Positions 23,801-32,800 are shown, numbered from the stretch's first letter. The stretch is DNA of 64,000 nt from Bugula neritina (GCA_964035545.1 OZ037767.1:5038707-5102706); one strand, 5' to 3'. Numbers and translations: made by a program. Notes: generated by a model from the letters alone, not told the origin.

Positions 23801-26800
23801 CACCTTCTGTAGAGAACATATTCCTTGTGAATAGGAAACTGTATTGTTGTTTGTAAAATTTCTCTTTGGAATAAATGTAGATGAATTTTAAGACATTAAT
23901 TTAAAGCATTGAATTTTCCGGAACTTTTCTTAATTCAAAGCCTCAGAATAATTTATGTTTTAAAGCAGCAACTTTGCTCTGTTTAATTTAGTTCAAGAAA
24001 TGCTGGAGTTGGAATCTCCCAGATCACCCGTCGCTGACGCACCACTGGGTGCTGCCAGATCTGCTGACGCAGGTGCTATTCCTAAGGTCTCTAAACAAGG
24101 CAGCGCTAAACCCTCCAGACACTTCTCTGACAGTGGTAAATTGTTTGATCAAATCTCTAATAAGTTGAATTGTTTTTTGGTAAATTCTTTTTTAAACAAA
24201 ATTCGAAGCTATTAGCTCATAGTTGATTGACGTATTGGTTATATTAGTGCTAATATAAATATATTCATCAGTTTAATTAGATCTAATTTCTGTGCAGTGT
24301 TCAATATAATTGGGAATAGCCATTCTGCTAATGGGGCACAACTTTGTACTCCCTGTGCATGTGGTTTGTCACAGAAGTACACTTCAAAGCTGACAGCGTG
24401 ATTATTTTTGCTCAGATATCCTTATTGCAACCTGTCTTCCCACAAACAAGTGTTCTGTTTTACTATATTACTTTTTCAATAAATCAGACTACATGCAATT
24501 TATTTTAAACATATTTCAATATAAAAGTAATCATTCCTTTTAAAATGAAATTTTGTTGAGCATAATGAATTCAATCTGTTAATTTAAAGCCACTCTAATT
24601 TATTTACATTTTATTTTGAACATGAATTACATTTGCGTCTTGAAATAATTCTGCTCAGTAGAGAAAGTGGGAGTCGTTCTCTCCCTACTAATGTGTGCAT
24701 TCTAGAAAATGTAGCCTTGGTGTCAGGTGAAGACACTCAATCCAGCCCTAGTTCCAGTGTTTCTGGTTGTGAGAGACAGGCACTACTTGTTACAGCCTTG
24801 TCTAAAGCAGAGAGTAGTGAAAAGACTCCGCCATTATACCACAGTAATGAAGGCCCCATCCGACCCCGCCGCTCTGTCTATAGATTCACTAGTCTTGGTA
24901 GCTCGGAGCATAGGTGAAGAAATGTCATTTCATATTTTGCTGTTTTATGCTATAAATCTGTATTTGATTACTTATGTTTAAAAAAAATTTGGAGGAAAAG
25001 AAAAACTCATTTAAATTTACTTTAAATGAGTTTTTATGTAATTTTGACTCATTTACTTTTCACATTTATGTTGGTAGTTATTCTTTTATTGTATCTTGAT
25101 CACATGATTTATGAATGCTATGTTTAATAATAATTTTGAATACTGATTGTGAAACAAAAGCATTTGCATATTTTAATTTTATACATAATTCTTCTTGTAT
25201 ATTTTTGACGACAAAATTTGTTATATTAACAACATGTCGGTGTTCACAGGAACTCCGCGCGGCGCGCCAGGTACTATGGGTCACACAGCAGCTGGGGGAG
25301 TCGTCGGAGCAGCCGGTCTCGTAGGCATTCAGACTCAGATCATCCAGTATTCACTGCTCAAAATGAGGGGCATGCTGAAGAGCCCCCCACCGAGCAGTGG
25401 CACTTCTTTAAAGACACTGATGGTAAGTCATTTCCTGTTAATTTAGATGTGTTGAAGTAGTAATGTACTAAATGGAAAATATTTGATCTAACTTATTTTA
25501 ATTGCTATTAGTTCAAACAATCCATGATATACAGTAATATGAGTTCATTGTTAAGGTACTGTGTGATGATAATGAAAGGTTAAGTACAGGAATGTAGTAG
25601 AAAGTTTTTTATTTTTCTAGGATTTTAGTGTATTGAATGTACAATAACTATAAGTAATTTACATGGAATGTTTTATCACTCATTTGAAATGTCAAAGTGG
25701 CTCATAACATGATATTTGCCAGGCAAAGTACACACATTCAATCTGTTCAGTTGGAATGAAACTATATGCATCTGCTTGTCAACAGGTTATTGGAATAATT
25801 GCAGACGCAGATAGTGTTTGTATCGCAGAAACTGTAGTTCAAGTAGTATAGGAGGCACTTGTTTTGTCCCACTTGTACTTGACTTTCCTATCTGAGTTGT
25901 TTGGCAGTGGCACATAAAACACACTGCTGGGTCCACTCAAGCTGCAAGTATTAACATATGAGTAACAGAGTTGATGACGATCAACATTAAATATAACATG
26001 TGGAAGGAGTATATAAAGCTTATCAGATATTCTCGTCTATGCCTGATGTCTTAGTACAGTGATAGGACTGCTAGTAGACAAATTTTAAAGTTTTTTGGTC
26101 TTAAATTAGGCCATTTTTCTAGCCTTTCATTATGATTAAAATACGTTTAAGGATTGTTGCATTAAGAGGATTAAAGTATGCAACATTTTACCTGCTGCGG
26201 CCAGACGAGGATCTTTCAGGGGTACCTTGGTCCGAGCCAGTCACAGCTGAAACAAATAGATTTTAAAATAGAAGTTTTATTGCAATAATCTCAAGTTTGC
26301 TTTCAACTCTTTAGACGCACACTTTAGCATTGTATAACAAAAGAAGTTGCAATTTAGTCTCTATCCAAGGCTAGCTTAGCCTCCAACAGCGTTTGTTATT
26401 TGATGACCCACCAGGTATAAGTAAACTCAACCTACCCTATTACACAGGTTTATGTAGACTAAGAAATAAACAAATATGTCCGATACTGATACTGTATATC
26501 AAACAGTTTTACTTTCTTAGGTGCAAATTGTTGTACAAAGATAAAAAATAACAATATAAATTTAAAGAAATTTATATTGCATATTCATCAAGCATACAAA
26601 ACTAAACCATCAGTCATTCTACCAAAGCTACGATCAGAGCAATGGAGTTGTCAACTCATTGTAACTTCCTAATCTCACTTTAACAAAACGACTCACACAA
26701 ACTCAGTGACATTTACCTCTAGACTCATCTCGCCTGCTTTCTCTGTGAATTGATTCTTGTGTGGGTAGATGTGCACTGCTGCTACTTCTACTACTACAAG

Positions 26801-29800: not shown

Positions 29801-32800
29801 ATCGAGGCGTTCCATTGGGCTTTCTCTCATCAACTCGATGAATTTTCCTACCGTGTAGTTACGTTGGAATGCCTCTCGCAGCACGCACTCTGTCATGTTT
29901 GTTTTTAACTCTATGTTTTCGATCTCAATCGCCCTCATACCAATCACCTGTGCCATCATTTTCCAGTTGTTTCCTGACAAACATGCTTCCGATGTTATCT
30001 TATTAATGCATTTGTTTCTTCAACTCTTTTACGTGTGAATCATTTTTAAAATATTGTATTCAATTAAATTGATGTGTTACTATATTGTGTCTTGATAGCA
30101 TAAAGATGTTTTAACTGCAGGTATTATAGTAAAGGCCTAACATACAAATACTATATACATTGTAGGTACATATTTAGCCTGCTATTAACATACAAGTACA
30201 TTATGTTAGCATATCCTAGAGATATTGTATTGGTATGGAGGTACTTCAAACATTTTTAGATAGAATTTTGCTTGGCTTGAGTTGTTGATTTTTTTCTGTA
30301 TTTGAGTTTAAAATTTAGTATCTAGGGCATACAAATCTGGTTATCTTCTGGAAATGAGGCTATGCTTCCAGTCTGCATCTCTCAACATGTCTCTAGTCAT
30401 TCTATTGTCTCTCAGAAGTGTTTGTACTTGCCTGTATCTAAGATAAAGTCAAGGTAACAACAGGTGCTCAACACTTGTTCTGTGGATAACGTACCTGTTA
30501 TCAGATTAGGGTTAAGGTAAAGACATATTTCCTGTCTGGTTCTATGATTGAGAGCTCGTAGCGGAACATCATAATACTCTGCTGGAATAGCTCCATCTAT
30601 CAACTTCTGTGTGGCAGACATACTTTGTTATCAGCAGAGAGTTGACTAAACTCTGTATCTACAACTGAAATTATTCTTTTTGGAATGCAACTTCAAAAAA
30701 CGTTAAAATATCTACCTACCTTCCACCTGACATCACATGTTTTAGCTTATCACTATTTGTCATTGTTATCTGACTCAATGTGTTTTAGTTGTTAGAGTGG
30801 CATAACAAATAAATGATATATAATCAGTTGTAGCCCTGTGAGTGATGACATTGTAATGATAATATGAATAATATCAATTTCTCAAGGGTTCAAAGTTGTT
30901 TCTTCAAGTTTTAGTTGTTTCCATAGGAAAAGGACTGATGAAATTTAACCAGATTTTTCTCATATTAGACTGTGTATTACACCATAATCTGATGTAGTGA
31001 CTAGGTTATTCTATGTAGTAAAATATGTTGGTGCATGTCTACTAACAGTACTGTGATATAATGATATGATGGTATGCATCAAGTGCAGATTTGAATTTTT
31101 TTGAATAGCATTAGTTCTACACTGTAGTATGGAGGAAATCACATTCCAATTTCAAACACCACATCAATAATGCTGAACTTTTGTAAGCAAAAATCTACCA
31201 GGGTATACACAGGCCTGAGTGTGCTGTAATAGCCAGTAGTATGTGTAGTAAGATATGTTAGGGGTGGGGGAGTACTGCATAGCCCCAGATGTGCTGTAAT
31301 AGCCAGCGAGCTAGTCTCAGCATCACGTGTAGTAGTTGGAATAATCTGTTGGTAATGGCGAAGTTTTACATTTCTCATTTTAGTGTGGTGCAGCACCAGG
31401 TAGAGCAATATAGTGCAGTATAGTATAATATAATATAGTATAGTACACCATAATATAGTATAGTGCAGGCCACTGCAGCAACATATAGTATAGTAATAGT
31501 ACACCATAATATAGTATAGTGTAGGCCACTGCAGCAACATAATATAGTATAGTAATAGTACACCATAATGTAGTATAGTACGGCATAATGTACTAATATA
31601 GTGCGGCATAGTGTAGTATAGTGATTTTATAGTATAGTGTAGTATAATAAAGTGTAAAGTACAGCATAGTACAGCATAGTACAGTGTAGTAAAATGTAGT
31701 ACAGTATACTGTAGTATAGTATAACTATACATGAAGGTGATGTAACTGTGTCACTAACAGTTACTACCACCACTCTTAATACTATTAAATCACAGTTGGT
31801 AGTACATTAACTACTTACCATTCAGTGAGTTACAGTTCCATGTCGTCTCTTGTCGCACTGAATTGAGTTAATAAATCTCACTAGTAATGCTAACTTATGT
31901 TGTCACGCTTGAGGAGTTTCTTGAATGAGGAACTTAAGCCTACTGTTAATAGTTAGTGACGTAATCTTATCGCAGTGTTTTGATAGATTCCTTTTTAATT
32001 TTCATATTATGTGTAAGCACTTGTGATTGCTTTTCCAAGGCCCACCTACTTTAATGTTTTTCTTGGTAATGAACCGTAGCCCTTGTTTTTATTATGTTAG
32101 ACAATATTTATCACTGAGTCATACTTTGGCTGACATGTTTTAACTGTTAGTCAAACAAGTTGGAAATTTCTTAATGCTTGGCCTTACCAATAAAATGTTT
32201 ATTCCAGCAATATTGATTATTATAAATTTTCATTTTTTACATGAATTCTCTAGATGACAACTTTTCTTTTTTAAATTAACTTTTTTAGTTGGGATTAAAA
32301 AAATTTGCTGTGTAGGAACTTTGGTTATTAGGAAAATGTAAATCCTTGCCCTTTTAATGGGTATAAAATAGCAGAGTACTTAGTTCCTGTAACACACTTT
32401 CACTGTACACCCTAGGCTGCTGGTACAAGTATACGTTTGACTCCACTTCTGATGGACTTCCTATTAACCTGGGAAAAGATTTCATTCCGCCAGATGCTGA
32501 CGGCGATGACATCGCGCCACTCCCTGGCTCCAGACCCCTCTACCTCGAAACAGATGATGACTTTGCGCTGTCGGGTTTCTCCTCAGACTACTCTCCGTAT
32601 ATCCGTCCTCGGGCTAACCCGGTTAGCAGTAGCGCTGGAACCGGAACAGCTCTGAACTTTTACGAGATTATGAGATCTCACCTAAGTGAGTTACTTGTAC
32701 TTGACTAACCTAACTTGTTTTTACTAATTACTAATTACTTATTCATGTACTTAACTGATAACTTACTTATGTACTTAACTGTAACTTGCTCATGTAGCTA

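Follow-up and report, generated by a model that had tools for sequence, protein, structure and literature searches.

The locus described here lies in a 64,000-nucleotide (nt) stretch of bryozoan DNA (assembly GCA_964035545.1, OZ037767.1:5038707-5102706), which is referred to below as the window and whose own coordinates are used throughout. It concerns two genes on opposite strands: pecanex, which runs along the plus strand, and a gene for a MyD88-type adaptor, which is read from the minus strand and appears to lie entirely within one pecanex intron. The window has the composition of AT-rich animal DNA (G+C about 36%) and comes from an assembly of 216 Mb in 321 contigs. Comparison material consisted of the Bugula neritina draft genome (GCA_010799875.2) and other contigs of B. 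neritina type, which are about 88% identical to the window at the nucleotide level, introns included, together with two RNA sequencing runs labelled 'symbiont metagenome' and made from one sample (X1 and X2) and a DNA run (X3). From its likeness to the B. neritina material the window is assigned to a bugulid bryozoan near to, yet distinct from, that of the draft. Contigs of all three runs were compared with window positions 25300-31299. Because those from X1 and X2 are mostly 90-95% alike to the window, we take the RNA to derive from a close relative. Profile, PDB and protein searches were made exon by exon, and the MyD88 exons were joined only as a check on the reading frame.

The two pecanex exons that flank the MyD88 gene are called exons 12 and 13 here, following the numbering of the initial annotation of this DNA. 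Predicted exon 12 occupies 25250-25422 on the plus strand, within an open frame at 25230-25421, with an acceptor at 25248-25249 and a donor GT at 25423. It ends ...CAG TGG CAC TTC TTT AAA GAC ACT GAT G/gtaagt (the slash marks the exon border), its last base (25422) being the first base of a Gly codon. Predicted exon 13 (32416-32685, plus strand; open frame 32418-32705, donor at 32686) begins ...ccctag/GC TGC TGG TAC AAG TAT ACG TTT GAC, that is, with the last two bases of the Gly codon followed by CWYKYTFD. The intron between them (25423-32415, plus strand) is 6,993 nt long, has GT..AG borders (AG at 32414-32415) and interrupts the Gly codon in phase 1. These borders and open frames can be read directly from the DNA and bear out the initial annotation, which had described an intron of this extent that joins the two exons in phase. 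In the relative, an RNA contig that covers exon 12 at approximately 25299-25424 stops at the predicted donor.

Pecanex homologues were collected by searching a 50% representative library with a downstream exon (41751-41990), which returned 313 proteins, 23 of them longer than 1,800 residues. Eight of nine long homologues are named pecanex-like (from Physella, Glandiceps, Rhincodon, Labeo, Acanthaster, Octopus, Ruditapes and Bacillus rossius) and the ninth is a Logan protein that carries no name. In tblastn searches, full-length homologues from molluscs, an echinoderm, a hemichordate, an insect and vertebrates are collinear with the plus strand from 17885 to 48843, with exons 50-85% identical. 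The likeness to the pecanex (PCNX) family of multi-pass membrane proteins extends in this way over the N-terminus, the membrane region and Pecanex_C, and positions 207-228 of the Pfam Pecanex_C profile (PF05041) match the open reading frame (ORF) at 45752-46177 with an E value of 4.5e-5.

Exons 12 and 13 encode part of the poorly conserved middle of the protein and were not reached by tblastn of full-length homologues at E 1e-3; the motif that they share came to light when each exon peptide was compared on its own by blastp at a relaxed threshold and a pattern was then searched for. In 11 pecanex homologues this motif, H-x-F-[QK]-D-x-x-G-x-W-x-x-Y-x-F, is uninterrupted, where its surroundings follow the pattern ...H[DE]DT..GA.H.F[QR]DE.G[NTV] W..Y.F[DGS]..., and the W-x-x-Y-x-F-[DG] of exon 13 is matched at the expected place in 9-11 homologues. 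WHFFKDTD from exon 12, the split G and CWYKYTFD from exon 13 together fit this motif with exact spacing and no indel, and the earlier proposal that the intron splits a conserved motif is upheld by its contiguity in the 11 homologues. Given this spacing, and an intron position that is shared with four other species (see below), the flanking exons probably form one coding sequence, and there is strong, if indirect, evidence that 25422 is spliced to 32416. The intron had also been proposed to be the largest of pecanex, and simple arithmetic agrees. Downstream, from 33833 to 48843, exons supported by homology are never more than about 2.1 kb apart; upstream, homologues also place coding sequence at 17885-18420, and the remaining interval of about 6.8 kb (18420-25250) is shorter than 6,993 nt and has to hold about 700 codons.

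Inside this intron, on the minus strand, nine coding exons with GT-AG borders throughout read through as one open frame of 1,179 nt, with 392 codons before a terminal TGA, as expected from the initial annotation, which had placed all nine coding exons of MyD88 antisense within the host intron. The gene model begins with a non-coding first exon, whose 3' part (31819-31880; all features of this gene are on the minus strand) is supplied by an RNA contig and whose donor GT lies at 31818-31817. It is followed by an intron of 1,154 nt in the 5' untranslated region (5'UTR; 30665-31818, GT..AG, acceptor AG at 30666-30665). The next exon (30495-30664) comprises the rest of the 5'UTR and coding exon 1, with the ATG at 30621-30619, a TAA in frame 9 nt upstream of it, and 42 codons plus one base of coding sequence. 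Coding exon 2 (29773-29973) encodes the core of a putative Death domain, and two short exons, exon 3 (29066-29107, 42 nt) and exon 4 (28573-28611, 39 nt), encode a linker. The first part of the TIR domain is encoded by exon 5 (28139-28322), its middle part by exon 6 (27519-27682) and its end by exon 7 (26717-26980), which also holds the start of a serine-rich tail. The tail continues in exon 8 (26192-26246), which is placed by frame continuity and by the B. neritina protein EB796_012458, and in exon 9 (25839-25941; stop TGA at 25841-25839), where an RNA contig lies on 25792-25945. A minus-strand AATAAA at 25608-25613, which had been noted before as a candidate poly(A) signal, is present in the sequence 186-191 nt from the pecanex donor and keeps that candidate status. 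The interval 25423-32415 takes in every coding exon, the donor of the first exon at 31818 and this candidate signal.

The domain assignments support, within the limits of sequence comparison, the earlier identification of the gene as a MyD88-type adaptor that combines Death and TIR domains. Exon 2 alone matches positions 16-75 of the Pfam Death profile (E 0.045, 14.3 bits, against a cut-off of 22.6), the domain being split over exons 1 and 2, and on its own it has no match among the solved structures in PDB. Exon 5 matches positions 3-44 of the Pfam TIR profile and exon 6 matches Pfam TIR_2 (E 6.5e-4), such that the Death and TIR/TIR_2 pieces follow one another in collinear order over the exons. 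Human MyD88 is the best PDB match for all three TIR exons. For exon 5 its TIR domain is matched at chain positions 7-62 with E 7e-7, whereas Toll-like receptors follow at E 3e-3 or weaker, which is at least 5,000-fold weaker. For exon 6 human MyD88 is the only PDB match (E 0.06, chain positions 64-103) and Toll-like receptors are absent; for exon 7 it provides the seven best of 8 PDB matches (E 0.009, chain positions 119-144), among which Toll-like receptors are likewise absent. TIR box 1 (FDAFVSY, exon 5) and box 3 (WFW, exon 7) are present. The putative Death domain and the TIR domain belong to one polypeptide, given the single frame over nine exons and the RNA contigs that connect exon 1 through exon 7.

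The predicted protein resembles human MyD88 (2Z5V, 4DOM, 4EO7, 7BEQ, 8W8M) in its C-terminal TIR domain with boxes 1 and 3, and probably also in an N-terminal Death domain and a short linker. It differs in carrying, C-terminal to the TIR domain, a serine-rich tail of about 125 residues that is specified by the last part of exon 7 together with exons 8 and 9, in the BB-loop of exon 5 (28190-28210, minus strand), which reads RDLCMG where human MyD88 has RDVLPG and in which Met replaces the loop proline, and in its gene structure of nine coding exons with a minor isoform that skips the 13-codon linker exon.

Much of this gene model can be followed in the RNA contigs of the relative, in which the skipped parts read CT..AC on the plus strand and hence GT..AG on the minus strand. 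Intron 1 is seen as a joint at 29972/3-30494/5 in contigs of both X1 and X2. The joints 29107-29773, 28611-29066 and 28322-28573 correspond to introns 2, 3 and 4; exon 2 therefore has RNA joints on both sides, as do the two linker exons. The joint 27681-28139 corresponds to intron 5. Its printed ends are CC..AC with one extra letter between the two sides, as would fit a mismatch in the first letter of exon 6. Support for intron 6 comes from a loose contig end at 26980, TGGGTACAGT, which matches the last letters of exon 6 in reverse complement. The minus-strand junctions of MyD88 that had been predicted from the DNA are thus recovered for introns 1-5 as joints and for intron 6 as a loose end, and introns 7 and 8 are not among the joints listed. 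In addition, a minor RNA contig joins 28322 directly to 29066, skipping the 39-nt exon 4 (13 codons of the Death-TIR linker) and keeping the frame. The mammalian isoform MyD88s, in which the intermediate domain is missing, may be a parallel.

The 5' end of the gene is where the RNA and the initial annotation part ways. A loose contig end at 30665 (run X2) reads ATTCAGTGAGTTACAGTTCCATGTCG..., which is the reverse complement of the window sequence ...GACATGGAACTGTAACTCACTGAAT ending at 31820/31819, and the 5'UTR acceptor (30666-30665) is therefore joined to the donor at 31818-31817. A first-exon donor near 31818 had been anticipated and the contig indeed ends the first exon at 31819, but the small 5'UTR intron proposed at 30665-30719 is replaced by the single intron of 1,154 nt. 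The contig is 594 letters long, and its letters 423-594 lie on 30665-30494; the 422 further letters upstream of the junction indicate that the MyD88 leader is long. If collinear with the window, the leader would reach to approximately 32240, still inside the intron and about 175 nt from exon 13. The leader also contains two short upstream ORFs: ATG GAA CTG TAA in the first exon (31819-31845, minus strand), and a second one (30650-30664, minus strand) whose ATG is formed across the exon junction and is followed by TTG TAG.

Not all RNA contigs are spliced. Lower-depth contigs run unspliced over 30650-31299, and others over part of the 3' half of the gene (26226-26746); these may represent pre-mRNA, RNA of the host intron or an isoform that retains intron 7. 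None of the intron-removing joints occurs in the DNA run X3 on 25300-31299, and hence no processed copy is seen. With eight coding introns and one 5'UTR intron, spliced in RNA, the gene is not a retrocopy, and we reject that origin, in line with the earlier statement that this is not a recent retrocopy.

Comparison with other animals indicates that the intron is older than the gene within it. An intron in the same Gly codon is found, from gaps in protein-to-DNA alignments, in the pecanex genes of a clam (Ruditapes, about 324 nt), a snail (Physella, about 131 nt), a sea star (Acanthaster, about 407 nt) and an acorn worm (Glandiceps, about 1,648 nt); in a stick insect the motif lies within one long exon and the intron is absent. 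The position is thus common to lophotrochozoans and deuterostomes, and is older than the nest. In none of the five loci (Ruditapes, Physella, Acanthaster, Glandiceps and the stick insect) does the annotation place a gene within pecanex, and tblastn of the nine MyD88 exon peptides against them gave no match better than chance. Compared with its counterpart in the four species that share it, the intron of the bryozoan is longer by a factor of 4 to 50, an excess explained by the MyD88 gene inside. The human MYD88 and PCNX genes are on different chromosomes. The claim that the nesting is specific to a lineage is therefore supported by an orthologous intron of 0.13-1.65 kb that appears empty in four animals, and by a stick insect locus with no nest.

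Within the bryozoans, the B. neritina material covers the 3' part of the nest. Among proteins, the searches turned up as close relatives only EB796_012458, a B. neritina 'hypothetical protein', and unnamed fragments from Logan and JGI. EB796_012458 joins exons 7, 8 and 9 as modelled here, with 91, 81 and 97% amino-acid identity respectively, and is all that the draft annotates of MyD88, namely a 145-residue 3' fragment. At the DNA level, the NCBI contig VXIV02001840.1 (L007) and the Logan/JGI contigs L008-L011 follow the window collinearly between 28413 and 18176, a span that takes in MyD88 exon 5, the 3' end of MyD88, pecanex exon 12 and exons upstream of it, with the two genes on opposite strands. 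As far as these data reach, MyD88 in B. neritina ends just inside the intron that follows exon 12. Against L008, MyD88 exons 6 and 9 and pecanex exon 12 (96% identical) align without indels or stops, with 7/2, 4/1 and 4/3 synonymous/non-synonymous differences respectively, and exon 7 has one 3-nt indel; the introns show 12-61 gap positions. Exons without frame breaks, and changes that are mostly synonymous, indicate that both genes are maintained in both species. One contig departs from this order further along: VXIV02001840.1 follows the window from 27564 down to 18176, in pecanex intron 1, and its positions 9421-11746 then follow the window from 52176 down to 49834, where a PP2C phosphatase gene lies beyond the 3' end of pecanex. 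This jump reflects either a rearrangement that separates the two species or a chimera in the draft assembly.

Peptides of exons 2 and 5 find this locus and no other in the 216-Mb assembly. Genome-wide scans with Pfam Death and TIR gave no co-located Death/TIR pair elsewhere, which is weak evidence as the scans also missed the present locus. A single matching locus would fit relocation better than an extra copy. The initial annotation had proposed just such a relocation of an intron-containing gene, and the intron-bearing structure, the sole matching locus in the genome and the absence of the nest in five animals all agree with it. We infer a move at the DNA level, and not by retroposition, into a pre-existing intron in the lineage that leads to bugulid bryozoans, after the bryozoan lineage split from the sampled molluscs.

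We consider it highly probable (roughly 0.88) that the locus is a host/nested pair in which a complete, spliced and expressed MyD88 gene lies antisense in one ancient pecanex intron. Several points weigh against this interpretation or narrow its base. No contig of a second assembly was found for 31300-32415 and exon 13: in the relative, neither word searches with the ORFs of exons 5 and 2 nor two metagenome scans, with the peptides of pecanex exon 13 and of MyD88 exon 2, recovered the 5' side of the nest. Among bryozoans the full nesting was sampled in this genome, with the 3' half only in the B. neritina contigs, and the DNA run X3 may be the very sample that underlies the assembly. The junction of 25422 to 32416 is argued from the motif and the shared intron position, as the comparison with RNA covered 25300-31299. 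For MyD88 itself, introns 7 and 8 rest on frame continuity and the B. neritina annotation, and the lower-depth RNA contigs over 26226-26746 leave intron 7 and exon 8 unspliced. A shorter tail isoform is possible; a form that retained intron 7, if real, would meet a stop five codons past exon 7 (GKCH, stop) and so drop the conserved tail of exons 8 and 9. Finally, the per-exon Pfam scores are under the curated cut-offs, as expected where single-exon fragments are searched.

One rival reading is that the arrangement is an assembly artefact, with a MyD88 segment misplaced between pecanex exons or with flanks that are in reality two separate genes. The 5' side of the nest has no independent contig behind it, and the jump of VXIV02001840.1 from 18176 to 52176 illustrates that odd joins occur in assemblies of this group. 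However, four independent contigs (from NCBI, JGI and two Logan runs) run unbroken from inside MyD88 through its 3' end into exon 12 and upstream, and on the other side an RNA contig links the first exon (31819) to the coding exons. The exon ends, moreover, fit a motif that is contiguous at an intron position shared with four phyla-level relatives, and the extra length of the intron is almost exactly that of the MyD88 transcription unit. With these observations an artefact becomes a highly improbable explanation. It is also very unlikely, though a little less so, that the canonical MyD88 lies elsewhere in the genome and that the nested gene is an additional, perhaps decaying, Death-TIR paralogue of this lineage. 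The BB-loop (RDLCMG against RDVLPG) and the long serine-rich tail, which is absent from human MyD88, could be read as signs of such a paralogue, and a divergent second copy could have escaped genome-wide Pfam scans that were too insensitive to list even this locus. Yet no second locus in the assembly is matched by the peptides of exons 2 and 5, and no Death match lies near a TIR match elsewhere. The gene itself has a frame that is intact over nine exons and shows mostly synonymous changes against the relative, and in X1 as well as X2 its exons are represented by RNA contigs with splicing at the predicted positions.

Under the host/nested interpretation, pecanex (plus strand, 17885-48843) would be one gene whose ancient phase-1 intron grew to 6,993 nt through the presence of MyD88 inside it. 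MyD88 would have a promoter of its own within the last 600 nt or so of the intron, upstream of a first exon that ends at 31819, and would give a transcript with the 1,154-nt 5'UTR intron and nine coding exons, encoding a 392-residue protein with Death domain, TIR domain and serine-rich tail; its 3' end would fall about 190 nt short of the pecanex donor (candidate AATAAA at 25613-25608). The two would be independent transcription units, with the pecanex polymerase reading through the antisense MyD88 gene and the spliceosome taking MyD88 out together with the pecanex intron. Any cross-talk between pecanex and MyD88 is hypothetical, including the transcriptional interference upon immune induction of MyD88 that the initial annotation had suggested. 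A functional nesting, in which antisense transcription of MyD88 has been selected to modulate pecanex output through interference or coupled regulation, has some points in its favour: the genes are convergent and their primary transcripts overlap fully, two species about 12% diverged have at least the 3' side of the nest in common, and examples of interference between a nested gene and its host have been described elsewhere (PMC3192792). Conservation over such a short distance is, however, expected from descent alone, and pecanex can do without the nest, which is absent in five other animals. Transcript contigs of both genes are found in one and the same bulk RNA sample, an observation that speaks neither for nor against interference. 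On balance we think selection for such a function quite unlikely. The more ambitious version, in which the nest is old and bryozoan-wide and has been kept since antisense MyD88 tunes pecanex (a Notch/ER factor) in infection or bacterially induced metamorphosis, is very unlikely; if true, genome architecture would here tie a developmental gene to innate immune signalling.

Taken as a host/nested pair, the locus is a genuine lineage-restricted nested gene and a new instance of a well-known and ordinary kind. Nested intronic genes are common, with about 6% of Drosophila genes being intronic (PMC3786989), and their gain and loss have been described before (PMC3933685). The closest parallels are 2mit, in intron 11 of Drosophila timeless2 (PMC3786989), and LRRTM in introns of alpha-catenin (PMC3933685). 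Like these, the bryozoan case would be a whole gene on the opposite strand, with its own promoter, in one intron of an unrelated host, and it is restricted to a lineage. Unlike them, MyD88 has many introns itself (nine coding exons, plus one intron in the 5'UTR) and takes up about 90% of the host intron. A full-text literature search found no paper that links MyD88 with pecanex or describes a nested MyD88. The evolutionary interest is modest and bears on no open question, but the origin of this nest is clean and datable: a small empty intron shared with molluscs, an echinoderm and a hemichordate appears to have received a multi-exon gene in bugulids. There is also a practical value for annotation, as overlapping genes on opposite strands are a configuration that automatic pipelines can break, and bryozoan immunology gains a full MyD88 gene model that includes an isoform skipping a linker exon.

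Several repeats accompany these genes. A high-copy interspersed repeat lies in MyD88 intron 5 (27900-28100, strand unassigned), where the contigs of X3 reach a summed depth of 19,212, against about 100 in the flanks, and many divergent loose contig ends occur at 27959-28003; ARAGORN found no tRNA in it. The MyD88 5'UTR intron contains a (TATAG)n / 56-nt tandem repeat at 31409-31723, and larger tandem arrays are found in pecanex introns at 38880-40960. A match to mir-2804 in a tandem repeat was below the Rfam threshold and was rejected. Both the (TATAG)n-type and the longer tandem repeats yield spurious long ORFs with many Y, T, I, L and H residues. Upstream of pecanex, and head-to-head with it, the window holds a gene with SH3 and kinase domains (MLK-type; approximately 660-10475, minus strand). 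The same neighbour is found in Physella and Glandiceps, and this microsynteny therefore spans lophotrochozoans and deuterostomes.

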